DNA of 26,971 nucleotides from Macrostomum lignano (Eukaryota): NCBI GenBank assembly GCA_002269645.1, contig NIVC01005075.1, positions 1-26,971 of the forward strand. Direction: 5' to 3'. The position numbers were made by a program, and so were the translations under genes. Each line of letters begins with the position of its first letter. Position 1 is the first letter of the stretch. Below the pieces are notes generated by a model. The model saw only the letters and a list, made by a program, of their open reading frames with translations. It made no database searches and was not told where the DNA came from. Below, piece after piece: positions 1 through 26,464 of the stretch.

Positions 1-29
1 TGAGGACAATGGTGTGAGCTCATTATCTC

Positions 30-190: not shown

Positions 191-203
191 CATACCTTGG
201 CAG

Positions 204-1731: not shown

Positions 1732-1960
1732 CTACAAAACGCGGCACACGAGATTTACATCACGCTTAGGTCTAATATGGATTACCTCTAGAACCAGCCG
1801 ATCCACTCTAACATCCATCTACATGTACGAGTAGACTAAGGCGTTGAAGTTCATCTCGTGCTAATCTCGTGTGATTTGGAGCCGATTCCCGACAATTTAT
1901 CAGCGGCATTTTCTTACGGCGATTTGGCTAAGGCGAGAAGCGATTCTCCCGGTGGTTAAG

Positions 1961-4010: not shown

Positions 4011-4069
4011 CTTCAACAATAAAATCGACAAATCAGTAAAACTGACGGTCCACAGCAGGCTGCACTCAC

Positions 4070-5087
4070 CGCCTATCGTGCCGCAGCACTGTGGCCGACG
4101 AATAGGCCGGCGGCCTGGCAGCATACGAGGACGCACCAGCCGTTGATGCCGTGCTGGCTGTCGGCACCGAAGTCGACGTGACCAGACGAGCCCCGGGCCG
4201 CCAGTTGACGTTGTAGAGGTAGCGGCCCGAATTTTGGCCCGATGCTGATAGTCGGCGGACGGTGCGCCAGTTGAGGTCATCGCCACTGTAGACGCTGTAG
4301 ACGTTCTTGACAGATTGGGCCGGCCGGAGGACGACAGCGCCGACGTTGATGCCGGGTGCGCCAGCCGGATGCGTCGGTTCCGCTCGGCCTTGGCGTGGTT
4401 CAGCCGGTCGCCCTGGGTCTCCTCTTCGTTCTCGTTCACAACAGCCGGCTGGCTGGACGACGGCTGGTGAAAGCCGGCGCTCATGCTGCGCGTCACCGGG
4501 CCCTGCAGCGGGCGGCCCGCGGACAGAGCGGAGGGCGCGGTGCCGCCGCCGCCGCCGCCGCTGCTGCCGGAATCGCGGTTCTTGCGCGCCCTGAGCAGAT
4601 CGCCCTGCAGCCAGCACTTTGCCTGCTGCGACTCCAGCCAGTCCTGCTGCGGGCCAAGCACGGACCCCGGTCGGCAGATGCGGCACCAGGCGATGGACTC
4701 GGCGGCTGTCATGCGGTAATGCTTCATCAGGTAACAGGCGATTAGGGTGCCGGTGCGGCCCAGTCCGGCCTTGCAGTGGACTGCAACGGCGCCCTGCGTC
4801 TCCTCTGAGATGCGCAGGAACTCCTGCATGATGTCATCGGTGGGACAGGAGCCGTCAACAAAGAACAAATCGTAGTGCCGAAAGCCGGCCGCCGTGAACC
4901 GTTTGGCATCGTAGAGGCGCATGTTCAGCCGCACTACTGTGGTGACGCCGTGCTTGCGAAAGTAAGGAAAATACGCCTCCGGCGTGTGCAGCGGATAGCC
5001 GTCCCGCAGGCTGCTCTGCTCGTGTGGGCCGCAGAAGGCGATAAATTTGCCGGGAATGATCCAGTTCAGGTCGCCGTTCTCAACTTG
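4070..5087 (-). CDS. CDC14: CDC14 phosphatase, large exon: catalytic DSP domain plus Ser/Thr/Ala-rich tail
   Basis: Translates [22 protein letters not shown]...[24 protein letters not shown]...[49 protein letters not shown], the CDC14 signature with intact HCx5R loop (4755-4778), followed by TQGDRL. Acceptor tttcag (AG at 5089-5088), donor gtgagt at 4069-4064. Probable 1-nt indel at 4191-4194. Confidence 0.96.
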
Positions 5088-5117
5088 CTGAAATGGGTTG
5101 ATTGCCGTACATTATTG

Positions 5118-5626
5118 CACACTGACAGCGGTGACAGACTGGGATAGAGCACACTGACAGCGGTGACAGACTGGGATAGAGCACACTGACAGCGGTGACA
5201 GACTGGGATAGAGCACACTGACAGCGGTGACAGACTGGGATAGAGCACACTGATAGCTGTGACAGACTGGGATAGAGCACACTGATAGCTGTGACAGACT
5301 GGGATAGAGCACACTGACAGCGGTGACAGACTGGGATAGAGCACACTGACAGCGGTGACAGACTGGGATAGAGCACACTGATAGCTGTGACAGACTGGGA
5401 TAGAGCACACTGACAGCGGTGACAGACTGGGATAGAGCACACTGATAGCTGTGACAGACTGGGATAGAGCACACTGACAGCGGTGACAGACTGGGATAGA
5501 GCACACTGACAGCGGTGACAGACTGGGATAGAGCACACTGACAGCGGTGACAGACTGGGATAGAGCACACTGACAGCGGTGACAGACTGGGATAGAGCAC
5601 ACTGATAGCTGTGACAGACTGGGATC
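5118..5626. repeat. Intronic minisatellite, 32-bp unit (cacactgacagcggtgacagactgggatagag), ~16 copies, two variants
   Basis: Near-perfect tandem copies; variants acagcggtg and atagctgtg; fills almost the whole CDC14 intron 5088-5648. Confidence 0.97.
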
Positions 5627-5648
5627 GCCTCAAACGCGACTAACTTAC

Positions 5649-5858
5649 CTCATAGTGCTCGTATTCTTCAACGTTGAAATTTTCAAAGTTAAAAAAGCCG
5701 TGTAGAAGAGCTTTGCTAACCGCGTGCAGGCAGTCCAGCAGGGTCAAATTGTACGTGCAAATGCCGTAGCTGGCGTCCCGGAACGGCAGATAGTGCAGGC
5801 CGGAGCCGCCAACCAGAGGCATGTAGGCCTCTTCCGGTGTTTTCTTCAGGTAGATAAT
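5649..5858 (-). CDS. CDC14: CDC14 exon ([70 protein letters not shown])
   Basis: Matches the CDC14 N-terminal domain motif PFRDAS-G-C-Y-LT-LDC; acceptor AG at 5860-5859, donor gtaagt at 5648; 210 nt, phase 0/0. Confidence 0.96.
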
Positions 5859-6372
5859 CTAAATTAATTGCGTTAGGGTTTCGCAGTACTCAGCTGGATA
5901 GAAGTGTGGATTATGACTTGGGTTGCATAGCCAGCAGTTGAAATCTGATCACTTCCTCCAAAAGGCCGAATAAGCAGTGAGAAATTTGATGAAGGACAGA
6001 GTGAACTGTATATACTTGTGGCTAGAAATTGGTTTACTTTTAAATTTCGACCCGAAAGACATTCAAAAACGATCGATAAAAGCCTGTTTTAAACAAATAT
6101 TTCTATCGGTATTTTTTGTGCCTGTAGAATATTAACAATACACAATATATATAGTATCTTCAACACTACAGCACAGACAAGAGAGCACTAGCGAGTTGGA
6201 ACCGAACACTGGGAAGGGGGTGTGGCAGCTGTTTTCTTTCTGGCCATTCGGGAAGAAAGAAAGAATTGCAAAAGCAGACTAGAAGAACTAGGAGGCTACG
6301 GGAGCAGGAATGAACCACACGAGACCAGAGCAAGTATGAAAATTCAATATCTCTAAAGTGTCATTTGCATAC

Positions 6373-6541
6373 CTGATAAGCTCCGACCAAGAAGGCAGCG
6401 TTAGCTCTCTTCTTAGGATTGACGCACGTGTAGTGCACTATTCGCTTCTTGGACAGGGAGAACGATTTGAACTTCTTGTTGAGCCTGCAGCAGTACTTGT
6501 ACAGCATGGCCAGGTTGAGCGGCCCGAAATCTGCGTAGAAG
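6373..6541 (-). CDS. CDC14: CDC14 exon (N|[56 protein letters not shown])
   Basis: Hallmark [11 protein letters not shown] and KRANAAFL motifs; acceptor ttcag (AG at 6543-6542), donor gtatgc at 6372; 169 nt. Confidence 0.96.
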
Positions 6542-6654
6542 CTGAAATGCGGGGCGCATCGGGTGCACTAAAATACCACTAACCACCTGCAAGTTGCGAT
6601 GCAAGCTACTATTGCATGCAGAAGCACAAATATCTGACAATGGCCTGGGTATTG

Positions 6655-6868
6655 GCAGTAATAATATTTAATAACAATAATAACTTATTACACCTGCCCA
6701 CCCTCAATTACCCCAGCTAATGCTGGCACCCATTTTACAGCTGGGTGAACTGAAGCAATGCAGAGTCAAGTGTCTTGCTCAATTACACATTGTTCCAGTG
6801 GGAGCGGGAATCGAACCCCCGACCTTAAAAGCTGTGAGTCTGACACTCTAACCACTAGGCTGCAATCC
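6655..6868 (-). mobile_element. tRNA-derived SINE with CORE-like central domain and TTA-rich tail
   Basis: Minus strand reads gcagcctagtggttagagtg (Pol III A box) ... ggttcgattcc (B box, 6817-6807), then gagcaagacacttgac...cagttcacccagctgtaaaatgggt (resembles the CORE-SINE core), ending in ttattattgttatt. Confidence 0.8.
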
Positions 6869-6914
6869 CGAATCTTAAGAGCAATGGCAGTATAACTGAG
6901 GAAGTTGGGTAATG

Positions 6915-7144
6915 GCAATGTACTGATACCTGAGCAAGTGAGTAGCTGCAATGTACTGATACCTGAGTAAGTGAGTAGCTGCAATGTACTGATACCTGAG
7001 TAAGTGAGTAGCTGCAATGTACTGATACCTGAGTAAGTGAGTAGCTGCAATGTACTGATACCTGAGTAAGTGAGTAGCTGCAATGTACTGATACCTGAGT
7101 AAGTGAGTAGCTGCAATGTACTGATACCTGAGTAAGTGAGTAGT
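6915..7144. repeat. Intronic minisatellite, 33-bp unit (gcaatgtactgatacctgagtaagtgagtagct), ~7 copies
   Basis: Near-perfect tandem copies immediately next to the SINE head. Confidence 0.96.
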
Positions 7145-7184
7145 CGCAGTCTACTAATTGTTAATGCTGACTAAATTTACTTAC

Positions 7185-7275
7185 TTGGCATACACCAGCT
7201 CATCATCAATGGAGAAGTAATGTGTGCTGTTGGTGCTCTTTGGAGTTGTCTGCAGAGTAGCAAAGTAAAATCGAT
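7185..7275 (-). CDS. CDC14: CDC14 exon (D|[29 protein letters not shown]|N)
   Basis: Matches CDC14 DRLYFATL...HYFSIDEELVY; acceptor tttag (AG at 7277-7276), donor gtaagt at 7184; phases agree with both neighbours. Confidence 0.93.
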
Positions 7276-8624
7276 CTAAAAATGTAAAATAAGATTAGCA
7301 AATCAGTTAGACAATTCAAAATACTTTCAAAATAATAAATTTCTTAAAAGTACTCGCCTATAGACATTCAAAAGCTAAGCAAATTTATTAAAATATCTGA
7401 AATATCCGATCTTTTTGGCTATTTGAAACAAAAAATTATTGTTGAATAACTCTATTGTTTCTTTAAAGGGGCTAAGGTTACTAATATTAAACTAAAGATA
7501 ACAATCATAAGCCAATATATAGTAAAGGATTTTTAGTATATAGGATATTTAGATTAGAATTTTTTATTTTAATAAAAGTTTTATTGCTATTTTCCTAATT
7601 ATTAAACTATTAGATAGCAATTTATAATTCACTAGTATAAAAAAATATATACAAAGCAATTAATTGCAAATGTTTATAAAAATGCACATGCTAATAACAA
7701 TGTCACAGTTAATTTTTTCATTTATAATCACTATAACTATAACTATTAAGCAGCAAGCCTATTTCTTATAGATAAGATATATATAGAAAAATAGCAAATA
7801 GCTTTCATAAGACCATAAAAAGTAGATACATATTGAAATGAGTAGCTTAATGATAAAAGTATATATTCACAATCTACATTGATTAAGGCTCTAGCTTATC
7901 TAGTTGTCTCTAATTTAAATTCTTTAAAAGCAAAATATAACTCTAATATTTTAAACCAAATTTTTATGCTAAAAGACAATTTAATAATAGACAATTTGGT
8001 AATGGATAATTCAGTGACACTCAAACAAAGATAGTTTTTTTTTAATTTTTAATCATATGTTTTAAAAGGCTTTTGTCAATTTTATATTGCCTAACTCTCA
8101 TAAAACTTGGTCTCAACCAATAAATGAATATAATTATGGCTAATTTTAAAGTATTATATTTTAAAATATAATGTTCTAGGCATTGTTTATTATTAAAATG
8201 ACAATTTTATTGTTTAATTTATTAATTATATAGAATAGAATAAGGCTAAAGAGTTGCAACAAGCAATATAAAAATATAAGGTACAATTTGAACTTTCATC
8301 ACAATGCCATAGGGCACTAGGTTTTTTTGTGCAATAAGGATGCCAAATCATATCTTAAAATTAGACCTTGGATATTATTTTGCATTCTAGTTTGCATTTG
8401 CATTCAGATAGGGTATATTTTCCTTTTATATAATTTATTTGTCTAATATATTAATAAATTCTATTATTACCAAATGTTTAATCCTTTAAATACTTGTCAT
8501 TAGATTTATCACATACTCATATATCTTATATTACATACTATTAATATATATCTAAATTTATAGCATAAATAACATGATATAGACTTAAGCTTAATACTTA
8601 GCCAACTAAGCCATATGGTAATTG

Positions 8625-8745
8625 GTTGTTTTACCCCTAAACCATTTTGGCCTTATGTTTTGCCCCTAGACCATTTTGCCCATAGACAATTTTGCCCATA
8701 GACCATTTTGCTCCTAAGCCAATTTAGTCACAATAGTTTAGCCAA
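8625..8745. repeat. Short degenerate ~15-bp array (accattttgcccatag)
   Basis: Repeated ccattttg/ttttgccc motifs within an AT-rich intron. Confidence 0.65.
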
Positions 8746-9060
8746 GGTTGAGGCAAATGCCTAGACTTGCAGAAAGTTGACAGATTTTTTTCTTGAAACT
8801 TTTTATGAAATGCTATATGTCTTTAGATTATCATTAGCAAATTTATTATTAATTTCAATCACAACTCACAAATTGTATTATAATTATAAAGAAAAATGGC
8901 TTTGATTATTATGTAGTTTATTGCAAGTATGCTCCTAGAAAAATAATAACATTAACAATACTTTTATGATCGAGCAGCAAATTGTACTTGTGTCGCAGCA
9001 TTTATATCATATTAGACCTAAAGTGCAGGTTATAAATGACAATTTGAATTTTACACTTAC

Positions 9061-9133
9061 CTTTTATAATTTCAGCTGCACTGACAACTACTGATGACAA
9101 AGATTCGTCATCATTAAAGATTCCTTCTTTCAT
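9061..9133 (-). CDS. CDC14: CDC14 5' coding exon (MKEGIFNDDESLSSVVVSAAEIIK|D)
   Basis: ATG at 9133; AAEIIK-D aligns with the CDC14 xCEFMKD position; donor gtaagt at 9060 in phase 1, matching the next exon. The frame stays open to an acceptor at 9171-9170, so the N-terminus may be longer. Confidence 0.8.
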
Positions 9134-10484: not shown

Positions 10485-12421
10485 ACCGTTTCTTCGCTCG
10501 CACGGACGTATTCAGCATGCCAGTGAAGTATGAGACAGACCAGGCCTATGGGCTAAGGTCTGCGATGCTCCACGCCTGCCCCTATCTTCAGCAGGTAAAG
10601 GCTGGTGGGAGGTCTGCACCCTCTATTTGCCGCTGGCAGCCGCAGACCCCTTCCCACGTAGTTTCGCAAGCCGACCCAGGGGTACCCGTCCCCGCGAGTG
10701 TTCAAGGCAGACCCTAGGGCTGCCGGACTGACTAGGCTCCGGCGCTGGGAACCCATCTAGTGGCTTTTGCCGAACTAGGGTATGCAGGTTTGGCTCGCCA
10801 GTCCGCAGGCCGTGGTACTGCTCAACGTACCCTCTAATGCCTAAGGTGTTCGACCGTGCCGAGGGTTGGAAGGCCGGGGAGTAGTCCGGTCGCTAGCGGT
10901 CCCCCTCCTGGTGTCGGGCCAGCCTTGAGGGTTCTTTTGGCCTACTTCCGGTCAGGTGGAGCAGCCGGGTGGGTACCGCTCCCCTTTGAGGGTAGCCTAC
11001 CAACCTTTATCATGGCCTTCGAGCCGACTATGGATAATCAAGCTAATTCTAGGGACGGGGACCCTTCTAAACCCCAACCTCAGTCCGACGGACCGGCCGG
11101 CCCTGCTGGCAGATCCCAACCGACTGATTCAACTGTGGCAAAGGGAGGACCGGCTGGCTCTGCTGGCAGATCCGACCAGAGAGCTACCAAAACCAAAGTA
11201 CCCAAAGACCTGCCAGCTCTACTGGTGGATCTAAGGGAACCGCGGGCTCTGAACCTAAAGGACCGGCCAAATCTGGCAGATCCGACGAAGCTCAGCGGGC
11301 TCGGCTTGAGCGCAAACGCGCTAAGCAACGCGCCAAAAGGCAGGCCAAGAAGGGAGCCGCGGGGGCCAAAGTGGCGGCGTCCACCATGGATGCTGAAGCG
11401 ACTGGCGTCCCAAGGCAACCAGACGGGCCGGCCGGTGGAAGCTCCAGTAGTTCGCCAGGGCGCTCCCTGGAGATGCTGCTGCGGCTGCTGAGGCCGAAAC
11501 CATGGCGCAACAAATAGCCACTGCCAACAAGGAGGTTCCTTCGGGAGCTACCTTTGCGGCGAAGGCCAAGGCCAAAATCCCGGGAGTGATCATTCAAGGT
11601 CGCGACCAGGACTGGACCACTGGTCAGCTTCAAAATGTGTGGAGTGCTATTGACTCCTATCTGATTGAGCTGACTGTCGAGGAGGGAATCTCCATTGGCA
11701 TTGAGCGGATGGTGCTGCGAAGCACATTCGTTCTTATTGCTCCCAGCAGTGAGGAGGACGCTCAGCAGCTGCTCCAGCGGCTGACGACGGTCTCCTTGGA
11801 TGCTGACCTCGGTGGAGCCCTTTTTCTTCGCGAAGGCCAGCGTCCAAAGAGTCCCTACGTGGTTTTTGTCCCCGCAAAGAGCACCGCAGCTGGACAAACG
11901 TTATCCTGGCTGTGTCATCGACTCGCGAATCAAAGCGTGGATCAGGACCCAGCACCGCTCGACTTGGGCGAACTACACTACCTGCATGCAATCCAGAGGC
12001 ACTGTCCCTCAGCCCTCTCACCAGCTCCGGAAGCTCGTCCTGCGCCTCTCGAGCAGCGACATCCGGGCTGCCACCATGACCCTCTCAGGTCACGGCTGCT
12101 TCTGTCAGCATCTGTCCCGCCTTTACGCGAGCCAGACTCACTTACCTCGGGCCACACACATCTATTACTGAAGCGTGCAAACCCGAAAACTTTAATTAGC
12201 TCATGCGCTACATGTACCTCTGGGCCCCCGCAGGGCTGAACTCTCCTTTCCAGAGAGCACCATAGCTGCTGGCGACAGTAGGGGACCTCCCTGGGCGGCG
12301 CCAACCCTTCGTCCATAGCGACGCATCGGCCGTTTAGGGATTAGCGGAATGGGCGTTCGTGCCTTCCCGCTGTGTCCCCCCGGGACAGCCCTGCAGCTAC
12401 GTCAAGTAAGACCGTTTCTTC
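10485..12421 (+). mobile_element. GC-rich retroelement-like insertion bounded by 11-bp direct repeats ACCGTTTCTTC; carries only an ORF1/gag-like gene
   Basis: ACCGTTTCTTC at 10485-10495 and 12411-12421; sharp GC-rich block between AT-richer flanks; no RT or endonuclease motifs seen. Confidence 0.6.
11010..12239 (+). pseudogene. Frameshifted non-LTR retrotransposon ORF1-like protein (resembles DUF4780-type ORF1 of R1-like elements)
   Basis: Switching frames near 11200 and 11460 gives four GPAxxAGRS-type repeats, a basic segment (SDEAQRARLERKRAKQRAKRQAKK), TFAAKAKAK, then a globular region (W..ID.YL.EL...LIAPSSEEDAQ.L...P..PY.VFVP...L..RLANQ). Family assignment is from pattern memory, not a search. 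Confidence 0.5.
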
Positions 12422-13074: not shown

Positions 13075-13827
13075 AACAACCAAAGAGGCTTCCTGGAACT
13101 GCGTAACATGAAAAATCGACCTATAAAAAACGACCTATACTCTCGTATACGAGCTAAGCATAATTATCGATAGTATTTTATAATTAACAAAGCAATTTAA
13201 GCAATCAAAAGCAGGTGCATGTATACATGTAGATCTAGAAGCGGGTAAACCATCTCGATGGTTGCTTTGAGATGAGTTGGAATCAGTGACCAAATTCGGC
13301 TGGCCTTCTGTTAGCTAACCAAACCCCGGGCCAATGTTACACACACCCACGCAAGCCCACATATTCAGCTGAAGTGGCCGGCCCGTCTCCCTTCGAATCA
13401 GTTTAGGACTGTATCGACTGTTTGCCCACTGCGCCCATCCCCTCATAAGTCAACTGATCGCGTTAGATTGGCCCATGGCCCAGGCCCAAGATGCCATTTT
13501 ATAATCGGCCCTCCGTGGCCACGATTCTTCCTCTCCCACTTACCTGCCCGAGCCTCAGTCAAGGTCAGAGCCGTCTAATAATTATTGCCTGTCAGGTTCT
13601 TTGGAAATTCAATCAGCTCTCCGGTTTTAGGTCACCACCGTAAGTTGTATTTTAACCTCTTCTGGGCCAGGGTCCAACTCTTACCTGCTGGTGCACCTTG
13701 CAATCTGGGTCAATACGAACATGCACACCAGTCATTCGAGTCGTTTAGGACTTATGATTGTACGTGTATACAACATCTCACCTGTTTCCACCAACCCACA
13801 AAAAATCCAGAAGTGATTGCGCAAGTC

Positions 13828-14283
13828 ATGCACCCAGTCTCTGCCGTTGCCTCATCGTCCGCCATCCTGACTGTCAGCTACCTGGCCCTGCTGATCTGCT
13901 CCGCTGTCGCTGGCGTCAACGCTGATTCGACGATCGACGCCACTCGCCGATCCTGGGATGACGGGCCCGGCCTGTCGCTTCGGTCGGCGGACTTCGATAT
14001 GACTTCCGGCTATCCGGCCATCGGCAAACGCCTAGCCGCTGTCCGCTTTGCCCACTACTACGTCGACCACGACGTCGACGAGGTTGGCATGAGTCCCGAA
14101 GCTGGCACGCCATCAGTGAGTCGTCGGGAATATCAACAGCTTCGAAGCGCAGTGGTCCAGCTGGCCCAGCGTCTGCTTGATAATCCGCGGCGGCAGCGGC
14201 TGATGCGACAGCGACATTTGTGGCAACCGACTGAGGCTCGGGTTGTCAACCTGCTGCTGTCGCGAGGCGGTAGGCGCACTTAA
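13828..14283 (+). CDS. Secreted neuropeptide prohormone (151 aa) with signal peptide and two amidation/cleavage sites
   Basis: ATG 13828 follows acceptor atccag (13810). Hydrophobic N-terminus (AILTVSYLALLICSAVAG-VNA); RR-SWDDGPGLSLRSADFDMTSGYPAI-GKR; further RR sites; C-terminal ..ARVVNLLLSRG-GRR; GC-rich coding-like block. Confidence 0.8.
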   Translation: MHPVSAVASSSAILTVSYLALLICSAVAGVNADSTIDATRRSWDDGPGLSLRSADFDMTSGYPAIGKRLAAVRFAHYYVDHDVDEVGMSPEAGTPSVSRREYQQLRSAVVQLAQRLLDNPRRQRLMRQRHLWQPTEARVVNLLLSRGGRRT

Positions 14284-14767
14284 GCCGGCCAACTGGGTCC
14301 AGGGGCATCTCGTCTGACTGGATGAAGAATTCATTTTATCACATTCACTTTGGGTCCGCTATTTTGCCGTCGGGCTTATTAATAGCTGGAAAGAAATCCT
14401 CAGCAAGTTTGCTACTGGCCATCCAGAGGATCCTAGCAGGTACCCATCACAAATAATGGCGGACAGGTACAAAATACTTTAGATTACGCTAGAAAAAGAT
14501 CAGGGTACTAAGGGTAGTTTTGCGAGTTGTTACAAAGCACATTGGGCCGCCGATGACGAGAAGCAGACATCGCCGATTGTGCGTCTTTGTCTTGACAAAC
14601 CTTCTTTGAAAATATACGTTCACAACTACAGCACGAATTACTTCAGTTCCGACTGACGCAGCTGTACTCAACCAAATGTGTTCGACACTTATTTTTACAA
14701 TTGTTCTTCTGAAAGATAATTACAAAACGGAAATACTCCGCGAAACCCACAAACCCAAGGACACGCG

Positions 14768-15937
14768 CGCCGGCTGTCCGGAAATTCGTGAGAATGTGTC
14801 AATCGAGCAAGAAAGAAGCAAGCTGTTGACATGGTGCACAGATAATTTCAATATTAGACTCATACTAGCAATCAGCGCCCCCGTTGGGGAGCCATAATGC
14901 AGTACAAGTTTTTTAATAAACTACATGTTGCGTCTCTTTGCAATATACCTCAGCAGGCCCTTGTAAGCCTTGACATGTCAGCAATTCCCCCCACAAGCCT
15001 CGCATGGGAAAAAACGCGAGCGTAAAAAAGTGCCCGGAAAATAGCGTGCTTTACCTCATATAGAGCATTTATATACGATGCTCGTATATCCCATAGACAA
15101 TTGGTTGAAAAATGAAGCTCACAACTTGACTAACTGCTTGGAATAGCGGGCAATATAAGGCTCACACCATGCTCTATGCGCTCAATAACCAACGCAACGC
15201 AGTGATCAAGATTGCAAATTTTGACAGGCATTTCTTCAAAATGGAAGACTTCTAGACTTATGCCAATGCTAGATACAGTCCTGGAATCTGCGTTATCAGT
15301 TGTCATGACGAGCTACTCAAAGTTTTTGGAGTTGCGGCACCAGTCAGTCAACGGTTTACAGATGGTACTTAGAGTTCCGTGATGAAGCAGTTCCCCTGGC
15401 CTCAGCTCCTCGGAGCTCTTGTTGAAGAGGATTCAAAGGTTTATATCAGGGACCTCGTTGAATTTTTGGAATTTAGAAGAACAACAGTGCACAAAATTTT
15501 GACGGAGAATTTGCACCTTCAAAAAGTTTCTGCTGTCTGGGTTCCGCACGCTCTCTCCGAGGAGAAAAAGTTCGCAGGCTTTTTTACAACGAGGGCATGG
15601 AAAAAACTTTTTTGACAAGTAAGAGGTGGAAGATGAGACATGGGTGCACCTGAACGACACTGGCACAAAGTAAAAAACAGGTGCTGGCTTAGCCAAGGGG
15701 ATCATCGACCACATTCAGCGACCACAAGGAAGTTCGAGAAGCTGCGTTGCAGTGGGCAAGAGGGCCTTGACGAAGATTGCTTGAAAAGAGAGGTTCAGCG
15801 ACTCGTTGACCATTGCCAAGCTGTAATCAACACAAGGGGCGGGAGATCATATTACCAACTAGTACTGTTACTGTATTTTCCGACAGTTCTGACTGCTTTT
15901 TTAAGATACATTCTCACGACTTTCCGGACAGCCGGCG
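14768..15937 (+). mobile_element. Non-autonomous, internally deleted Tc1/mariner element with 30-bp TIRs
   Basis: TIRs cgccggctgtccggaaattcgtgagaatgt (14768-14797) and 15908-15937 match 29/30; TA follows the right TIR. Transposase remnants: HDELLKVFG..STVYRWYLEFR, TVHKILTENLHLQKVSAVWVPHAL, and C-terminal LVDHCQAVINTRGG..Y. Confidence 0.9.
15270..15860 (+). pseudogene. Degenerate mariner transposase: HTH domain plus WVPH linker plus C-terminal end; DD34D core missing
   Basis: WVPHAL at about 15538-15555; frameshifts and stops; only ~250 bp between the linker and the C-terminal motif, far shorter than a catalytic domain. Confidence 0.85.
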
Positions 15938-16852
15938 TAATAACAAGTTGCCTTGCAGTACTCAGTCTTCTAAGTAGTACTGAGAGCGTTTTAGCTGCAA
16001 TAGGCCATCAATTTCAACTGTCAATGTCCAAGGATCGCTAGACGTCCTGGGTGCGTAAGGACGTAGCATTCGCGTTGCTTACAAATACAATAACGAGAGA
16101 GAAAACCTACATTTTAAAGCACTTAATGGACGATTTTTATGCTATTACCCTTCTGAAATGCTATTACGGCGATCACATGAAGCTAGCGCATACAGTACAT
16201 GTATGAGTCTGGTCCAAGGTGGCTTCATCAGTTTAGCGACTAAAAAATCAAGAGAAATGCTACTGGAGACTTGTCAAACGCACTGAAACGCCTGGAGACT
16301 GTCTTTTTTCAAGATAGATTTTTCATGTCTGCGGTAAAACTCAAATTTTGATGCCATGCATTCGACAAAAGTTCTATAAAGAGCATTCAGTACTTTCACT
16401 TTACCAGCTTCCAGACGATGTTTTTATAAACTACTCGTAATTCAATTCAACATATTTTAACTGAAATTCAACCTTCAACCTGCAGGTGCAGCGGTAACTT
16501 TCATTGGCCCCTGTCGCTGGCGCCGATGCTATTGAAATCATGGTTCACTTTGACACACTGTGTATAAAAAGTACGCAATCTGTGTGCTTGAAAGTGCGAC
16601 AGGTGATTGTTTTGCAATAAATTTTCAATCAGAAAGAGTAAAAGTGAACGGCATTTGCTATCAGCTAGGAACAGACCCACGATCCTGGACGCGACTTGAT
16701 CAAATCACTGAGCAGCTGCCAAATAAGAAATGAAATGTGAAATCTCTTATTTCAGCCCCAGGCAGACTTTCGGCTCTGCTCTATTAATCCCGTCAAGATG
16801 AGCTGAGCTGGGACTGTTACCTGCACTCTTATTCCTATCTTTAGGCTTATTC

Positions 16853-18492
16853 CTGTCTCATAGCTTAGTAATGATGAGAATTAGCTGTCTCATAGCTTAG
16901 TAATGATGAGGCTTAGCTGTCTCATAGCTTAGTAATGATGAGAATTAGCTGTCTCATAGCTTAGTCATGATGAGAATTAGCTGTCTCATAGCTTAGTAAT
17001 GATGAGACGTAGCTGTCTCATAGCTTAGTAATGATGAGGCTTAGCTGTCTCATAGCTTAGTAATGATGAGGCTTAGCTGTCTCATAGCTTAGTAATGAAG
17101 ATAATGATGAGCTGAGCTGTCTCATAGCTTAGTAATGATGAGGCTTAGCTGTCTCATAGCTTAGTAATGATGAGGCTTGCTGTCTCATAGCTTAGTAATG
17201 ATGAGGCTTAGCTGTCTCATAGCTTAGTAATGATGAGGCTTAGCTGTCTCATAGCTTAGTAATGAAGATAATGATGAGGCTGAGCTGTCTCATAGCTTAG
17301 TAATGATGAGGCTTAGCTGTCTCATAGCTTAGTAATGATGAGGCTTAGCTGTCTCATAGCTTAGTAATGATGAGGCTTAGCTGTCTCATAGCTTAGTAAT
17401 GATGAGGCTTAGCTGTCTCATAGCTTAGTAATGATGAGAATTAGCTGTCTCATAGCTTAGTAATGATGAGGCTTAGCTGTCTCATAGCTTAGTAATGATG
17501 AGGCTTAGCTGTCTCATAGCTTAGTAATGATGAGGCTTAGCTGTCTCATAGCTTAGTAATGATGAGCTTAGCTGTCTCATAGCTTAGTAATGATGAGGCT
17601 TAGCTGTCTCATAGCTTAGTAATGATGAGGCTTAGCTGTCTCATAGCTTAGTAATGATGAGAATTAGCTGTCTCATAGCTTAGTAATGATGAGGCTTAGC
17701 TGTCTCATAGCTTAGTAATGATGAGAATTAGCTGTCTCATAGCTTAGTAATGATGAGAATTAGCTGTCTCATAGCTTAGTAATGATGAGAATTAGCTGTC
17801 TCATAGCTTAGTAATGATGAGAATTAGCTGTCTCATAGCTTAGTAATGATGAGAATTAGCTGTCTCATAGCTTAGTAATGATGAGAATTAGCTGTCTCAT
17901 AGCTTAGTAATGATGAGGCTTAGCTGTCTCATAGCTTAGTAATGATGAGAATTAGCTGTCTCATAGCTTAGTAATGATGAGAATTAGCTGTCTCATAGCT
18001 TAGTAATGATGAGAATTAGCTGTCTCATAGCTTAGTAATGATGAGAATTAGCTGTCTCATAGCTTAGTAATGATGAGAATTAGCTGTCTCATAGCTTAGT
18101 AATGATGAGAATTAGCTGTCTCATAGCTTAGTAATGATGAGCTGTCTCATAGCTTAGTAATGATGAGAATTAGCTGTCTCATAGCTTAGTAATGAATGAG
18201 GCTTATCTGTCTCATAGCTTAGTAATGATGAGAATTAGCTGTCTCATAGCTTAGTAATGAATGAGGCTTATCTGTCTCATAGCTTAGTAATGATGAGAAT
18301 TAGCTGTCTCATAGCTTAGTAATGATGAGAATTAGCTGTCTCATAGCTTAGTAATGATGAGAATTAGCTGTCTCATAGCTTAGTAATGATGAGAATTAGC
18401 TGTCTCATAGCTTAGTAATGATGAGAATTAGCTGTCTCATAGCTTAGTAATGATGAGAATTAGCTGTCTCATAGCAATTAGTAATGATGACA
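16853..18492. repeat. Satellite, 32-bp unit ctgtctcatagcttagtaatgatgag[aa/gc]ttag, ~50 copies
   Basis: Highly homogeneous tandem array; the gaggcttag variant dominates the 5' half and the gagaattag variant the 3' half. Confidence 0.98.
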
Positions 18493-18885
18493 CTCAGATT
18501 TTGAAGTGTGAGGAGAAACCGGTCAAATTATGGTCACAAGTTTCTAGCAAGCGCAGATGTCTAAGGATAATCTGCTACACAGTTTTTGGTAATTGGTCCA
18601 ATTACGTTTCCTTTGACTGCTCATAATTCGATGCCTCTGTGTCCGCAACAGGCTTATCTTTACGTGTCCGTGCATCTTTTTATTTTCCACACTGCTTTAC
18701 AGGAAAATTCCAGTTGAGTTTAAAGCAGTCTGAGTCCATTTTTGTCGAAAATCACTCTAATATTATTGGCCACTTACTCTGGCCAATCAGCAATCTTCCG
18801 TGAAGTTACCTGAAGATTTAAGATCACTCCAAAGCACTGAATAAGACAGCGTGTGTGTGTGGACGACTTTAAAATTGATTTTCTA

Positions 18886-18918
18886 ATGTCAGTCAAAAGC
18901 CTAATCAACACAGTGAAG
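18886..18918 (+). CDS. Candidate first coding exon of the GPCR (MSVKSLINTVK)
   Basis: ATG at 18886, open to AAG|gtaggc donor at 18919; phase 0 matches the acceptor at 21733. No homology support. Confidence 0.45.
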
Positions 18919-19009
18919 GTAGGCTGCATTGCTTCATTTAAATTTGTATTTGTATTGAGTACTCTACTTTTGGCATCCAGCTAATTACTCAAGCCATTCT
19001 TATATATAA

Positions 19010-21733
19010 TCATTATGTCACCATTCTACTCAATGTCAGCCATCAATCCACTCATTCTCAGGCAACAATCTACTCATTCTCAGGCATCAATCTACTCATT
19101 CTCAGACATCAATCTACTCATTCTCAGGCATCAATTTGCTCATTCTCAGGCATCGATCTACTCATTCTCAGGCATCAATCTACTCATTCTCAGACATAAA
19201 TCTACTCATTCTCATACATCAATCTACTCATTCTCAGACATCAATCTACTCATTCTCAGGCATCAATCCACTCATTCTCAGGCATCAATCTACTCATTCT
19301 CAGACATCAATCTACTCATTCTCAGACATCAATCCACTCATTCTCAGGCATCAATCTACTCATTCTCAGACATCAATCCACTCATTCTCAGGCATCAATC
19401 TGCTCATTCTCAGACATATCAATCTACTCATTCTCAGGCATCAATCTGCTCATTCTCAGACATATCAATCTACTCATTCTCAGGAATCAATCTACTCATT
19501 CTCAGGCATCAATCTGCTCATTCTCAGACATATCAATCCACTCATTCTCAGGCATCAATCTGCTCATTCTCAGGCATCTATCTACTCATTCTCAGGCATC
19601 AATCTACTCATTCGCAGGCATCAATCTACTCATTCTCAGACATCAATCTACTCATTCTCAGGTATCAATCTACTCATTCTCAGGCATCAATCCACTCAGT
19701 CTCAGACATCAATCTACTCATTCTCAGACATCAATCTACTCATTCTCAGACATCAATCCACTCATTCTCAGGCATCAATCCACTCATTCTCAGGCATCAA
19801 TCTACTCATTCTCGGGCATCAATCTACTCAGTCTCTGACATCAATCTGCTCATTCTCGGAAATCAATCTACTCATTCTCTGACATCAATCTACTCATTCT
19901 CAGGCATCAATCTACTCATTCTCAGACATATCAATCTACTCATTCTCAGGCATCAATCTACTCATTCTCGGGCATCAATCTACTCATTCTCAGACATATC
20001 AATCTACTCATTCTCAGGCATCAATCTACTCATTCTCAGACATCAATCTACTCATTCTCAGGCAACAATCTACTCATTCTCAGGCATCAATCTACTCATT
20101 CTCAGACATCAATCTACTCATTCTCAGGCATCAATCTACTCATTCTCAGACATATCAATCTACTCATTCTCAGGCATCAATTTGCTCATTCTCAGGCATC
20201 GATCTACTCATTCTCAGGCATCAATCTACTCATTCTCAGACATAAATCTACTCATTCTCAGGCATCAATCTGCTCATTCTCAGACATATCAGTCTACTCA
20301 TTCTCAGGCATCAATCTACTCATTCTCAGGCATCAATCTACTCATTCTCAGACATATCAATCCACTCATTCTCAGGCATCTATCTACTCATTCTCAGGCA
20401 TCAATTTGCTCATTCTCAGGCATCGATCTACTCATTCTCAGGCATCAATCTACTCATTCTCAGACATCAATCTACTCATTCTCAGACATCAATCTACTCA
20501 TTCTCAGGCATCAATCCACTCATTCTCAGGCATCAATCTACTCATTCTCAGACATCAATCTACTCATTCTCAGACATCAATCCACTCATTCTCAGGCATC
20601 AATCCACTCATTCTCAGGCATCAATCTACTCATTCTCAGACATCTATCTACTCATTCTCAGGCATCAATCTGCTCATTCTCAGACATATCAATCCACTCA
20701 TTCTCAGGCATCAATCTGCTCATTCTCAGGCATCTATCTACTCATTCTCGGGCATCAATCTACTCATTCTCAGGCATCAATCTACTCATTCTCAGACATC
20801 AATCTACTCATTCTCAGGTATCAATCTACTCATTCTCAGGCATCAATCTACTCATTCTCAGACATCAATCTACTCATTCTCAGACATCAATCTACTCATT
20901 CTCAGGCATCAATCTACTCATTCTCAGGCATCTATCTACTCATTCTCGGGCATCAATCTACTCAGTCTCAGACATCAATCTACTCATTCTCGGAAATCAA
21001 TCTACTCATTCTCAGGCATCAATCTACTCATTCTCAGACATATCAATCTACTCATTCTCAGGCATCAATCTACTCATTCTCGGACATCAATCTACTCATT
21101 CTCAGGCATCAATCTGCTCATTCTCAGACATATCAATCTACTCATTCTCAGGCATCAATCTACTCATTCTCAGACATACCAATCTACTCATTCTCGGGCA
21201 TCAATCTACTCATTCTCAGGCATCAATCTACTCAGTCTCAGACATCAATCTACTCATTCTCAGGCATCAATCTACTCATTCTCAGACATCTATCTAGTCA
21301 TTCTCGGGCATCAATCTACTCATTCTCAGACATCAATCTACTCATTCTCATACATCAATCTACTCATTCTCAGGCATCAATCTACTCATTCTCAGACATA
21401 TCAATCTACTCATTCTCAGGCATCAATCCACTCATTCTCAGACATCAATCTACTCATTCTCAGACATATCAATCTACTCATTCTCAGGCATCAATCTACT
21501 CATTCTCAGACATCAATCTACTCATTCTCGGAAATCAATCTACTCATTCTCAGTCATTAATCTACTCATTCTCAGACATATCAATCTACTCATTCTCAGG
21601 CATCAATCTACTCATTCTCAGACATATCAATCTACTCATTCTCAGGCATCAATCTACTCATTCTCAGACATCAATCTACTCATTCTCGGAAATCAACCTA
21701 CTCATTCTCAGTCATTAATCTACTCATTCTCAG
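19010..21733. repeat. Satellite, 22-bp unit catcaatctactcattctcag[g/a] (24-bp catatcaat variants), ~120 copies
   Basis: Continuous tandem array; source of the spurious 760/384/248-aa ORFs; the last unit ends in the AG preceding the GPCR exon. Confidence 0.98.
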
Positions 21734-22091
21734 ACATTCCACCCCTCTTCCTCCGGTCCCCGCCAGCCTGATGGCAACCTCAGCCAGCACCAGCTGATGC
21801 AGCTGCTGCACCAGAAGCTGTTCGGCCCGCGGCAGCTCAGCAGCTCGGATATTTTTCTACTAGCTCTGTACTCGGCCATCGTCCTGTTGTCGGTCGGCGG
21901 CAACGGCCTGTTCCTGTTTCTGAGCTTCAAGTATAGCGGCCTTCGACGCCACACCTCCTACATCATGATGAGTCTTGCTTGCTCAAACCTGCTCGTTGCC
22001 TGCACCTGCCTGCCAGTGTCAGCCGTGAAAGTTTTTTATAACACCTGGAAACTAGGCGGCACTGCCTGTCGATTAGTCAGTTTCATTGAAG
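21734..22091 (+). CDS. Class A (rhodopsin-like) peptide-type GPCR, exon covering N-terminus, TM1, TM2, ECL1 and start of TM3
   Basis: TFHPSSSGPRQPDGNLS (N-glycosylation sequon)...LLALYSAIVLLSVGGNGLFLFL (TM1 GN)...SLACSNLLVACTCLPVS (TM2)...WKLGGTACRL (WxxG..C); donor GAAG|gtgaat at 22092. Confidence 0.88.
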
Positions 22092-22129
22092 GTGAATACT
22101 GTTGTAACCTCCAGGTTTGGACCATATTG

Positions 22130-22840
22130 ACCTTAAGCTAAAGGATTACTGACCTAAGCCATGAAAAAGCCCTAATAAACTTGAGTTTTAGTGTCATAGT
22201 GACCTTGAGTTTTTTGGCCACAATGACCTTGAGTTTTGATTCCAAAATCACCTTGAATTTTTGGGCCAAAATGACCTTAAGTATTGGGGCCAAAATGACT
22301 TTGAGTTTTGGGGCCAAAATGGCCTTGAGTTTTGGGGCCATTCCATGAGTTTTATGGGCAAAAAGACCTTGAGTTTTGGTTCCAAATGACCTTATTGATT
22401 TATGGGGCCAAAATGACCATGATAATTGGGGCCAAACTGACCTTGAGTTTCGGGGCCAAACTGACCTTGAGTATTGGGGCCAAAATGACCTTGATTTATG
22501 GGGCCAAACTGACCTTGAGTGTTGGGCCAAAATGACCATGATAATTGGGGCCAAACTGACCTTGAGTTTCGGGCCAAACTGACCTTGAGTATTGGGGCCA
22601 AAATGACCTTGATTTATGGGGCCAAACTGACCTTGAGTGTTGGGGCCAAGATCACCTTGATTTATGGGGCCAAACTGACCTTGAGTTTCGGGGCCAAACT
22701 GACCTTGATTGTTGGGGCCAAAATGACCTTGAGTTTCGGGGCCAAAACCTTAGTCCTGAGTCTTGATTGGCTCTAATAGACCTTGAGTTTCGGGAAACTG
22801 ATTGAGTGACCTTGAGTTTTCGGGCTAAAGTGACCATTGA
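22130..22840. repeat. Intronic minisatellite, ~21-22 bp unit (ggggccaaa[a/c]tgaccttgagttt)
   Basis: Repeated ggccaaaatgaccttga / ggccaaactgaccttga, with degenerate edges. Confidence 0.93.
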
Positions 22841-23446
22841 GCTACAATTACGGGAACGTAGTGGCCTAGAGTCCTGAGAACATTATGATTTGATAGAAGG
22901 GTGAGTAAGACGAGGTTAACTTGCAAGATGTCGGTATTGACGCATGCGGTAGAGCTGGTGCAAGGAAATGAATGGCTGAATAATGAATGGACCAGACATA
23001 CAGAAATTATGGCAACTTGTAGGACAAAAAAACTTTATAATATAGGGGTGTTGAGTCAAAGGGCAGAAAGAGAGGGATAGAGCAATCTGGCATATTGAAT
23101 TCTCAGTGAGCAGGTGAGAGCTCAACCAGTAGTAGCAGCAACATACCACGCGCTAAAACATTCTTAATTAGGGCTTTTCAATCAGCAATTTGCTTTGTTC
23201 TGAGCTGCAGAATGCTCTCGTAAAAATTCGAAAATCCCTTCTGTAGTAGCAGTCCGAACTAATAACTGGGGTTCGAGAGCGCGGCCTCAGGTCATTTTAA
23301 AGAAGCTAGTAGTCCTTACTGAGCTTCTTTGTAAAGATTTACACGACTGGCGTCATTTCCATGAAGGTCACGTGCTTTGTTAATTATCAGTTCTAGCAAT
23401 AAAATACACAGTGTTAACCCCTTTTTAAATGACGCCTTCTCTGCTG

Positions 23447-23476
23447 ACAGTGTGTGTGTGATTCTGCATCCTGACA

Positions 23477-23519
<43 letters not shown>

Positions 23520-23979
23520 TGTGATTCTGCATCCTGACACAGTGTGTGTGTGTGTGTGTGATTCTGCATCCTGACACAATGTGTGTGTGTGTGTGTGTGA
23601 TTCTGCATCCTGACACAGTGTGTGTGTGTGATTCTGCATCCTGACACAGTGTGTGTGTGTGATTCTGCATCCTGACACAGTGTGTGTGTGTGATTCTGCA
23701 TCCTGACACAGTGTGTGTGTGTGATTCTGCATCCTGACACTGTGTGTGTGTGTGTGTGTGTGTGTGATTCTGCATCCTGACACAGTGTGTGTGTGTGATT
23801 CTGCATCCTGACACTGTGTGTGTGTGTGTGTGTGTGTGTGTGATTCTGCATCCTGACACAATGTGTGTGTGTGTGTGTGTGTGTGTGATTCTGCATCCTG
23901 ACACAATGTGTGTGTGTGTGTGTGTGTGTGATTCTGCATCCTGACACAGTGTGTGTGTGTGTGATTCTGCATCCTGACA

Positions 23980-24013
<34 letters not shown>

Positions 24014-24162
24014 TTCTGCATCCTGACACAGTGTGTGTGTGTGTGTGTGTGATTCTGCATTCTGACACAGTGTGTGTGTGTGTGTGATTCTGCATCCTGA
24101 CACAGTGTGTGTGTGTGATTCTGCATCCTGACACAGTGTGTGTGTGATTCTGCATCCTGACA

Positions 24163-24196
<34 letters not shown>

Positions 24197-24399
24197 TTCT
24201 GCATCCTGACACAGTGTGTGTTTGTGTGTGATTCTGCATCCTGACACAGTGTGTGTGTGATTCTGCATCCTGACACAGTGTGTGTTTGTGTGTGATTCTG
24301 CATCCTGACACAGTGTGTGTGTGATTCTGCATCCTGACACAGTGTGTGTGTGTGATTCTGCATCCTGACACAGTGTGTGTGTGATCCTGCATCCTGACA

Positions 24400-24457
<58 letters not shown>

Positions 24458-24850
24458 TTCTGCATCCTGACACAGTGTGTGTTTGTGTGTGATTCTGCAT
24501 CCTGACACAGTGTGTGTGTGATTCTGCATCCTGACACAGTGTGTGTGTGTGATTCTGCATCCTGACACAGTGTGTGTGTGATCCTGCATCCTGACACAGT
24601 GTGTGTGTGTGTGTGTGATTCTGCATCCTGACACAGTGTGTGTGATTCTGCATCATGACACAGTGTGTGTGATCCTGCATCCTGACACAGTGTGTGTGTG
24701 TGTGTGATTCTCACCCTGACACAGTGTGGGAGATTCTGCACCCTGACACAGTGTGTGTGTGATTCTGCATCCTGACACAGTGTGAGTCAGGATGCACCCT
24801 GACTGTTTGGGATTCTGCACCCTGACTGTATAGGATTCTGCATCTTGACA
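23447..24850. repeat. Compound satellite: constant gattctgcatcctgacaca block separated by variable-length (GT)n, ~37-39 units
   Basis: Units counted by eye; GT tracts range from about 3 to more than 30 dinucleotides; degenerate units and one inverted copy (tcaggatgca, ~24787) at the right edge. Confidence 0.97.
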
Positions 24851-25596
24851 ATGCGTTGGAGATTCGACTTCTTGAAGTTTGGGATATTCCTCATCCCCAC
24901 AGCTCCGCTTAGCGCATATTTTTTGTGCATATTTTAACAGCCTCAACTATTTGCCGCAAGAGAATTGAAGAGAAGATCGAAGCTCCCTAAGGCAGGGTGA
25001 GTGCTTCGAGATCCCTTCTTCCGCTGTTAGAAAAGGGAAACTATTCCCTATCAGACAGAAACGCGGAGGAAGGAAATCCCGCTGATTTGGGGATGCGGCG
25101 GTGTCGGTTGGAGCGATATAAGCAGCCAGGGGTCAGGCTGATCAAATTGGAAGTTCACCATAGATAAGAAGTAATTTCTCGGTTCAGCGGCAGAGGGAGA
25201 GATCTGAGCTGACGGCTGAAGACCGTCCGCAGCTCAGGAATTCCGTCTCAGGGCATATTGAGCTGCAGGTTGAGGAGTAGGGGGAGAGCAAAGTTCGTGT
25301 CTGAGTGGTCAGACAGTGTTTGCTTCCCTTGAGAATGGAAGCGATTAGCTGCTCGACTTTCTTATATCATATCAAAAACTTCCCAGGCAATATGGCATAG
25401 AACTCGTACAGTCCAATTGACATGCTTTATTACTACTTGCTATTAAGTAGCTTGAATTCTCGAAACTGTGCACAATTTACCTTGGAGATTGGCCCTTGTC
25501 CATCTAAAAGACATCTGCTTAGAGTCATGGACTACTTAAAAAAATCCTTGGCCGAAATCACGGAGCAAACATAATCCCCCCCAACTGACTCCGCAG

Positions 25597-26464
25597 GCTG
25601 GCCCTGTGCGTTAACAGTTTCCTGGCCCTGTGCGTTAACAGTTTCTCCCTGGCGTCCATTGCAATTTTGCGCGCCCGTCAGAGCGCCACTACAGCGGCGC
25701 CGCCGCCGGACCAGGTGAGCAACAACTCCAACCTGCGCCGGGTGGTGGCAGCCACGTGGCTTGGCGCCCTGCTGGTCTCCACGCCAGCCCTGTTCGCCTT
25801 CAGTCTGCAGCCGGTGAACATGCCGGTAGGAGGTGACGGCCGCGGCAACTCGTCCCGCAGCCAAGACGTTCACTACGTGTGCTCGGAGGATCGCAGCAAC
25901 CCGGTGGGGCAGAAGGCCTACTCAGCCTACTTCCTAGTGCTGCTGTTCCTGTCTCCCTGCGTGGTGCTGGCTTTCTCATACGGCGTCACCGCTCGATTCT
26001 TGTCCAGACAGTTCGGCCGCTTGACCGGCCGCCGGCTGCAGGCGGCGACGTCTCTCGGACAAGCGACCGCCGCGCTGGAGGAACAGCCAGAAGAGCTCCA
26101 GGAGCAGCAGCCACGCCTGGCCCTGACCAACCAGACTTCCGTAGCATCTGGCGGGCCGCTGAATCGGCAGCACCGGCAGACGCGCCGGCTGCACCGTCGG
26201 ACGGTGAAAACTCTCGCCGTACTGGTGGGCTGTCTTCATCGTGTGCTGGTTCCCCAAAGATCTGATCATTCTGTTGCAGGATTTTGTGCTGGAAAACCGT
26301 GGCGTGGACGCCGTGAGCCCCCTGATAGAGATTTACCCGTACAGTCAGGCCCTAATTACCTGCACAGCGCTCTCTGCCCGTTCCTGTACTGGTGCCTCAG
26401 CCGTGTGTTTCAGCACTACGTCAGAAAGGCATTCTCCAGGCAGCAGCCAGAGCAACGCCAATAG
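25597..26464 (+). CDS. GPCR terminal exon (TM3-TM7 and C-tail), interrupted by two compensating 1-nt indels
   Basis: Acceptor ccgcag (25596). LALCVNSF x2 then SLASIAILRA (TM3), VVAATWLGALLVSTPALF (TM4), C in ECL2, AYSAYFLVLLFLSPCVVLAFSY (TM5), RTVKTLAVLV-[shift at 26227-26229]-AVFIVCWFP (TM6), QAL-[shift at ~26354]-NYLHSALCPFLYWCLSRVF (TM7); TAG at 26462-26464. Confidence 0.88.

Follow-up and report, generated by a model that had tools for sequence, protein, structure and literature searches.

A taxonomically restricted, neuropeptide-precursor-like gene and a divergent peptide-type receptor gene as probable chance neighbours in Macrostomum lignano

In the P/R mating-type loci of basidiomycetes and in the agr and com operons of bacteria, a processed-peptide gene adjoins the gene of a peptide receptor, and this linkage persists between species and between alleles and has a functional explanation. 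Flatworm neuropeptide precursors of the npp/spp type, known from planarians, Macrostomum and parasites, are small and possess a signal-like N-terminus, mono- or dibasic sites, Gly amidation donors and an acidic spacer, and they lack Cys and a globular fold; all of these features are shared by a 151-aa protein encoded on contig NIVC01005075.1 of Macrostomum lignano (assembly Mlig_3_7, GCA_002269645.1), which was analysed here in its entire length of 26,971 bp and is referred to as the window. A preliminary description of this DNA had placed an orphan prohormone gene at 13828-14283 and a gene for an atypical peptide-type G protein-coupled receptor (GPCR) of class A at 18886-26464, on the same strand and 5-7 kb apart, and had read them as a possible ligand-receptor pair or as chance neighbours. 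With a probability of about 0.7, precursor and receptor are two independent neighbouring genes, brought close by chance in a gene-dense and heavily duplicated genome. Chance adjacency is the better-supported of the two readings originally offered, given that linkage in sister contigs is uninformative and that the spacer is junk-like and of variable length.

The two genes comprise the following parts, where TM denotes a transmembrane helix and P0003, P0004 and P0005 are public M. lignano protein models.
13540..13639, plus strand: non-coding 5' exon of the precursor-like gene, 5' limit approximate, donor C/GTAAGT at 13639/13640
13640..13810, plus strand: intron of 171 nt in the 5' untranslated region, GTAAGT...TCCAG, inferred from the P0003 junction and the window sequence
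13828..14283, plus strand: coding sequence (CDS) of the 151-aa neuropeptide-precursor-like protein, BOX15_Mlig032804 family, an intact open reading frame (ORF)
18886..18918, plus strand: hypothetical first receptor exon, ATG...AAG/GTAGGC, proposed in the preliminary description from sequence only
21734..22092, plus strand: receptor exon from the N-terminus through TM1 and TM2 into the beginning of TM3 (Pfam 7tm_1, E 3.8e-10; tblastn)
22093..25596, plus strand: receptor intron of ~3.5 kb, limits taken from the flanking exons, satellite-filled (Tandem Repeats Finder, TRF)
25597..26464, plus strand: receptor exon from TM3 to the C-terminus (Pfam 7tm_1; tblastn of P0004 and P0005), stop at 26462-26464

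Six sister copies of the locus (L001-L006) were recovered, all collinear with the window at 98.3-99.5% identity, and on their sequence the sister contigs are best taken as duplicates or haplotigs of one locus. Mlig_3_7 is a long-read based and highly redundant assembly with 180-312 Mb of duplicated sequence (PMC5730564). Nearly all differences between the window and L001 or L003 are single-base indels, L003 showing no substitution at all and 11 gap positions across 900 bp, whereas L002 is a genuinely diverged copy that carries substitutions. The 151-aa protein is annotated, residue-identical, on three contigs of the assembly, NIVC01005075.1 among them, and the truncated NCBI precursor proteins P0001, P0002 and P0003 are each cut by a different frameshift. 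A single-G deletion at window position 14104 is common to L001 and L002 and another at 14372 is common to L001 and L003; one recurrent single-G deletion shortens the precursor to 96 aa (P0001), and such recurrent deletions could be systematic homopolymer errors or truly shared alleles.

Between the precursor stop and the first homology-supported receptor exon, no ORF has a Pfam family match. The distance between these two points is 7.46 kb in the window, 6.14 kb in L002, 7.36 kb in L003 and >10 kb in L004. The adjacency and common orientation that had been described were upheld, whereas the lower figure of 5 kb was not, the gap to the homology-backed exon being 7.5 kb. The spacer and the receptor intron contain the following elements.
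15379..15615, plus strand: degenerate mariner/Tc1-like transposase relic with the second helix-turn-helix and a WVPH motif (best PDB match Mos1 transposase residues 74-125, E 0.03, marginal)
16853..18490, no strand: 32-bp satellite, ~51 copies (TRF)
19025..21737, no strand: 22-bp satellite, ~122 copies (TRF), directly upstream of the first supported receptor exon or within the hypothetical first intron
22180-22747, no strand: 24-bp satellite in the receptor intron (TRF)
23450-24784, no strand: GT-rich ~31-bp satellite in the receptor intron (TRF)

The mariner remnant and satellite first noted in the spacer are thus recognisable, the former as a weak relic at ~15.38-15.6 kb with no Pfam transposase match and the latter as the 32-bp array, to which the 22-bp array at 19025-21737 must be added. 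Both arrays differ several-fold in length among near-identical copies, with 2.7 kb in the window and ~0.47 kb in L002 for the 22-bp array, and 1.6 kb in the window and >7 kb in L004 for the 32-bp array. With its transposon relic and expandable satellites, the spacer is not a compact regulatory unit or operon.

Wherever a contig is long enough (the window, L002 and L003), the receptor comes after the precursor, but this linkage carries no weight because the contigs are copies of one locus, 98-99.5% identical. The rhodopsin family of Fasciola hepatica counts 135 receptor genes (PMC6114109), and flatworm rhodopsin-type repertoires can reach several hundred. Set against the 72,846 annotated genes of M. 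lignano (PMC5730564), a given gene would, as a rough estimate, have such a receptor as its neighbour in ~1% of cases. A genome with dozens of genes of the precursor-like kind would then be expected to show one to a few precursor-receptor adjacencies by chance, an equally rough figure. A literature search for reported neuropeptide-receptor gene linkage gave nothing relevant.

Several observations weigh against chance proximity. For any one pair, it is uncommon that a precursor-like gene adjoins a peptide-type receptor gene, the two genes are each restricted to the lineage or divergent, as expected of a co-evolving pair, and the public model P0004 joins the two, which could reflect read-through transcription, given that polycistronic precursors make up ~7% of M. 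lignano transcripts (PMC5730564). The assignment of the precursor is drawn from its anatomy. A cis-linked cognate pair, in which ...GYPAI-amide or ...LLSRG-amide would be the ligand of the receptor and the linkage would be kept by co-evolution or shared regulatory chromatin, agrees with the common strand, with the lack of any other recognisable gene between the two, with the position of the receptor among peptide receptors, with the lack of orthologues of either partner in the databases searched, and with the linkage in each sister contig that reaches far enough. However, the near-identity of these contigs makes their linkage uninformative, the spacer of 6 to >10 kb is filled with satellites and a transposon relic and varies in length, and the chance expectation is not small. 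The nearest relatives of the receptor bind RF-, RY- or F-amide-type peptides, whereas the predicted products are an Ile-amide and a Gly-amide, a weak argument at ~22-25% identity, and the transcript-based NCBI annotation has the precursor and not the receptor on the contig, which repeat or frame filtering could also explain. A cognate pair is judged very improbable, and so is the reading in which a Macrostomum-specific neuropeptide gene and the gene of a divergent receptor, its activation motifs rewired, make up a ligand-receptor pair that is young and physically linked. If true, such a pair would be a rare animal case of cis-linkage of a neuropeptide and its GPCR, showing the birth of new peptidergic channels, and a cognate receptor would be a ready candidate for deorphanisation in a transgenic, RNAi-tractable flatworm. 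Functional pairing, for which adjacency is the one argument, is neither supported nor excluded; we infer that precursor and receptor probably have no functional link.

The precursor-like gene is intact in the window, where a 151-aa plus-strand ORF with prohormone-like anatomy lies at the position first proposed. Its 5' exon is read through in P0003, an NCBI partial CDS from a sister copy, which splices ...GHH/QVIAQVMHP. The CDS has a GC content of 62% against 45-50% in its flanks, with values of 0.68, 0.51 and 0.68 at codon positions 1, 2 and 3, a coding-like periodicity that resembles that of the receptor exons. The GenBank genes of Mlig_3_7 derive from a genome-guided RNA-seq assembly, from which non-coding and repeat-overlapping transcripts were filtered out (PMC5730564), and the precursor is therefore counted as transcript-supported.

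The sole hydrophobic segment of the protein is N-terminal (residues ~11-32), reaches 2.49 on the Kyte-Doolittle scale and precedes AVAGVNA/DS, basic sites are present at RR40, GKR66-68, RR99, RR121 and GRR148-150, and Cys is absent. Dibasic convertase sites with a Gly amide donor flank the candidate peptides, and the signal-like segment, the dibasic sites and the Gly-Lys-Arg and Gly-Arg-Arg motifs together bear out the prohormone-like character originally described. Maturation would begin with signal-peptide cleavage near residue 32, proceed by convertase cleavage at the RR/KR sites and end with carboxypeptidase trimming and amidation at Gly66 and Gly147, and would yield two amidated peptides, one of 24 residues that ends in ...GYPAI-amide and a helical one from the C-terminus that ends in ...LLSRG-amide. 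The first predicted product, SWDDGPGLSLRSADFDMTSGYPAI-NH2, lies between RR40 and GKR66, and the second, an Arg/Gln/Leu-rich helical peptide with the predicted end ...VVNLLLSRG-NH2, lies before GRR148, with an acidic spacer between the two. Candidate amidated peptides are SWDDGPGLSLRSADFDMTSGYPAI-NH2, SADFDMTSGYPAI-NH2 and ...VVNLLLSRG-NH2, along with the RR121-cleaved halves of the last. AlphaFold2, run on the single sequence, returned helices only and no folded domain (mean pLDDT 42), which is weakly indicative of, and compatible with, a propeptide.

The only matches to the 151-aa ORF in a word-indexed search of 5.8 billion clusters are the M. lignano proteins BOX15_Mlig032804g3, BOX15_Mlig032804g4 and BOX15_Mlig032804g6, and no homologue outside M. 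lignano was returned by this search or by an exhaustive HMMER search of 1.84 billion representatives. A scan of metagenome contigs likewise returned only M. lignano copies, and no Pfam family matched, even at E 10, in agreement with the orphan status first claimed for the gene. With matches confined to M. lignano copies and none in Pfam, no conserved mature peptide was found in related species and no known peptide family was recovered. The predicted peptide strings were not found in the searchable literature, nor was the gene id BOX15_Mlig032804 in the literature searched, which included two supplementary tables.

Two resemblances to known peptides were considered. The likeness of the C-terminal helix ('LAQRLL...RRQ') to CRH, DH44 and ELH was rejected, as it gave p = 0.05-0.88 in Smith-Waterman comparisons with four members and 2000 shuffles, with no Pfam CRF match and no PDB match to CRF or urocortin. 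An orcokinin- or pedal-peptide-like reading of FDMTSGY concerns a single-copy, amidated sequence for which no database support was found.

The 151-aa ORF may instead encode another small secreted or membrane-anchored protein, even a young and possibly non-functional restricted gene, and not a processed precursor. This would fit the lack of any homologue or family, the single-copy nature of each putative peptide, the frequency of dibasic sites in Arg-rich sequence such as the Arg/Gln/Leu-rich C-terminal third, and the non-significant CRH/DH44/ELH resemblance of the C-terminal helix. However, GKR and GRR stand exactly behind the candidate peptide ends, and the protein combines an acidic spacer with the absence of Cys and of a predicted fold. 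In the diverged copy L002, moreover, the end of the signal segment has lost 3 nt and carries two replacements, and the spacer carries one replacement, whereas the peptide region has one synonymous change that leaves the predicted mature peptide the same, although so few changes do not permit a test for selection. A protein of another kind is therefore considered unlikely, if a serious alternative. The preferred description is that of a gene that is transcribed and restricted in its taxonomic range, and whose small, presumably secreted product is built like the precursor of a neuropeptide or peptide hormone, with predicted processing. 'Orphan, prohormone-like' is a fair description on this anatomical basis alone, and as a transcript-supported orphan gene it is a candidate neuropeptide precursor.

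Class A membership of the receptor follows from homology, as the frame-corrected protein matches Pfam 7tm_1 (PF00001) at E 3.6e-35 over positions 1-260 of the 260-position profile. Its best PDB relatives are NPFF2R, CCK1R, CCK2R, QRFPR, OX1R/OX2R, BB3 and NPY1R/2R (E 1e-21 to 1e-15, ~22-25% identity), followed by the neurotensin, opioid and CXCR4 receptors, and all 60 of the 60 best PDB matches are receptors for peptide or protein ligands, with no amine receptor or opsin among them. In the large database, the sequence search yielded no more than fish GPR39 and proteins like it, at 21-24% identity, and the profile search no more than an M. lignano paralogue; a metagenome scan added nothing.

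Compared with NPFF2R, the receptor has kept GN (N1.50), the Cys pair between Cys3.25 and the second extracellular loop (ECL2), W4.50, P5.50 and CWFP (CWxP), whereas D2.50 is changed to Asn (SNLL), DRY to Leu-Arg-Ala and NPxxY to Cys-Pro-Phe-Leu-Tyr (CPFLY). The canonical class A micro-switch set (N1.50, D2.50, E/DRY, W4.50, P5.50, CWxP, NPxxY) is thus incomplete, and the third intracellular loop (ICL3) is long and Gln/Arg-rich. The ligand type of the PDB matches and the alteration of D2.50, DRY and NPxxY together justify the original designation as an atypical peptide-type class A GPCR. SNLL (N2.50) and ILRARQ (LRA) are kept in the paralogue, which is 62-67% identical to the receptor and is represented by P0005, P0014 and P0015 (UniProt models A0A1I8GA70, A0A1I8G696 and A0A1I8GW28). 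All three models end at ...YQTRKLQKR(T), before TM6, with C7.49 outside their span; the paralogue may have an intron before TM6, unlike the window gene, or its TM6-TM7 exon may have been missed. Given that N2.50 and LRA persist in a paralogue at 62-67% identity, and that the coding part of exon 21734..22092 differs between the window and L002 by 4 synonymous and 1 conservative change (a sixth difference is intronic), the sequence argues that the odd motifs have been conserved within a small clade of Macrostomum receptors and are not the result of decay. Coupling of the receptor may be unusual because its micro-switches are non-canonical (N2.50, L3.49-R-A3.51, C7.49). By homology, it is a class A receptor that has diverged in its lineage and belongs with the peptide receptors (beta-rhodopsin group: NPFF/CCK/QRFP/orexin/NPY-like), encoded in two coding exons that span at least 21.73-26.46 kb, and as an unannotated, non-canonical peptide-type receptor it is an addition to the M. 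lignano gene set.

The raw plus-strand ORFs that match Pfam 7tm_1 lie at 21797-22141 (TM1-3, E 3.8e-10) and 25667-26464 (TM4-6, E 4.8e-08), and tblastn of the two M. lignano UniProt models P0004 and P0005 on the window places the receptor exons at 21764-22093 and 25622-26461, with P0005 covering 21764-22093 at 65% identity. The frame of the first supported exon is open from 21719 and has its first ATG at 21797 and a donor, GAAG/GTGAAT, at 22092/22093, and the acceptor of the second, CCGCAG/G, lies at 25596/25597. A conserved N-glycosylation motif is present upstream of the ATG at 21797, as NLS in the window and NFT in the paralogue; the start Met of the paralogue aligns with an Arg in the window, and the paralogue models begin inside the exon that corresponds to 21734..22092. 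The exon proposed at 18886-18918 is in phase 0 and splice-compatible with an acceptor at 21733/21734, and has no homology or transcript backing. The gene limits first given therefore hold at the 3' end, where 7tm_1 coding sequence runs to 26464, and not at 18886, the first homology-backed sequence being at 21734/21797.

The receptor ORF is not intact on this contig. The donor at 22092/22093 is in phase 1, with one codon base left, whereas the acceptor at 25596/25597 needs phase 2; an extra G in a GGG run (26227-26229) causes a +1 shift that puts TM6 and its CWFP motif in another frame; and a T missing from a TT run (26356-26357) causes a -1 shift by which the frame is regained before TM7. In addition, an exact 24-bp tandem duplication (25598-25621 = 25622-25645, CTGGCCCTGTGCGTTAACAGTTTC twice) would insert the 8 residues LALCVNSF into TM3 and is absent from both P0004 and the paralogue. 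P0004 is the only intact reading of the 3' exon and shows none of these defects (...IEG/LALCVNSFSLASIAI..., ...LAVLVAVFIVCWFP... and ...SQALIYLHSALCPFLY...), its other residues being identical; for 25597..26464 the comparison is with this protein only, as the sister-contig sequences retrieved end before that exon.

The region could be redundant and recently duplicated, and its receptor copy a pseudogene in decay; no functional receptor would then stand beside this copy of the precursor. In favour of this, there are three frame defects and the 24-bp in-frame duplication, the gene is unannotated, and the assembly holds the large amount of duplicated sequence cited above (PMC5730564). However, all three frame defects lie in 2-3-nt homopolymers, a typical site of long-read error, indels of the same 1-nt type are frequent in the sister copies of the precursor, the public model reads the same exon intact with residues otherwise identical, no premature stop has arisen by substitution, and the first supported receptor exon is 100% identical in L003. 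A pseudogene is consequently a possibility of the minor kind. Assembly error is judged the likelier cause because the frame defects sit in these short homopolymers and because such indels are rife in the sister contigs, and on this sequence evidence the three frame breaks are most likely long-read consensus indels. The 24-bp duplication could be a genuine lesion of a redundant copy, or a real allele, as opposed to an assembly artefact. NCBI has no receptor annotation on NIVC01005075.1, which says little about expression because the annotation filters drop repeat-overlapping transcripts (PMC5730564). The case illustrates how real genes in Mlig_3_7 are hidden or broken by indel noise and by introns full of satellites. 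Within 3828-24283 of the contig, the precursor is the only annotated gene.

The model that joins the two genes, A0A1I8IKR7 (P0004, 699 aa), maps to window positions 11085-11894, 13801-14271 and 25622-26461. It combines an ORF of unknown nature at 11.1-11.9 kb, the precursor up to LLSRGG and TM3-TM7 of the receptor, leaving out the TM1-TM2 exon, and its product would lack two helices and the amidation site of the precursor. Precursor and receptor could in principle form one transcription unit, as a polycistronic precursor resolved by spliced-leader trans-splicing or as a chimeric mRNA of the kind that A0A1I8IKR7 depicts. The model joins ...LLSRGG to LALCVNSF... by a donor, GCG/GTAGGC at 14271/14272, whose phase equals that of the receptor's own donor, and polycistronic precursor transcripts do occur in M. 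lignano (PMC5730564). However, the model also takes in the unrelated upstream ORF, skips the TM1-TM2 exon, which would leave a non-functional 5-TM product, and would cost the precursor its C-terminal Gly-Arg-Arg. In the NCBI annotation, which is based on RNA-seq, the precursor is a gene of its own with a 151-aa CDS, and the satellite-filled gap of 7.5 kb (6.1 to >10 kb across copies) is unlike a compact operon. A single unit is therefore most improbable, the fusion is very likely a gene-prediction artefact, and A0A1I8IKR7 becomes recognisable as a chimeric gene model.

The remainder of the window contains further sequences outside the two genes. The N-terminal part of A0A1I8IKR7 comes from 10856-12239 on the plus strand, where overlapping long ORFs (MAQQIATANKEV... 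and PTDRPALLADPN...) have no Pfam family and may be transposon-derived. A gene for a CDC14-type dual-specificity phosphatase occupies window positions 1-9100 on the minus strand, with the ORF at 3954-4934 as its 3'-terminal coding exon, and is annotated on sister contigs as a protein of 564-565 aa that contains DSPn and DSPc domains. Minisatellites, whose periods range from 22 to 69 bp, are unusually dense on the contig, and a number of them yield long spurious ORFs; further arrays lie at 1984-2673, 3638-4006, 5117-5625 and 6915-7143.

Compared with known systems, the locus resembles each of its counterparts only in part. Within the features that it shares with flatworm npp/spp-type precursors, the M. 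lignano protein has no detected sequence relationship to them, its peptides are single-copy with unusual C-termini (Ile-amide and Gly-amide), and it is known here from sequence. The vertebrate NPFF, QRFP, CCK, orexin and NPY receptors, its best matches, have in common with the window receptor the 7TM layout, the Cys3.25-ECL2 pair, W4.50, P5.50 and CWxP, whereas the window receptor is only ~22-25% identical to them and differs in N2.50, LRA, CPFLY and its long Gln/Arg-rich ICL3. The flatworm orphan rhodopsins (PROF1/Srfb, Rho-L/R and fwRhods) are likewise divergent, with altered 'ubiquitous' motifs and no clear orthologue (PMC6114109). Membership of the fwRhod/PROF1 groups was nevertheless considered unlikely for the window receptor, since it has significant non-flatworm matches whereas fwRhods are defined by E > 0.01 against non-flatworms, and the pipeline that defined fwRhods recovered none from turbellarians, M. 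lignano included (PMC6114109). In contrast to the P/R mating-type loci and the agr and com operons, where peptide and receptor genes adjoin, the M. lignano genes lie 7.5 kb apart with satellites between them and are associated here by their adjacency in the sequence.

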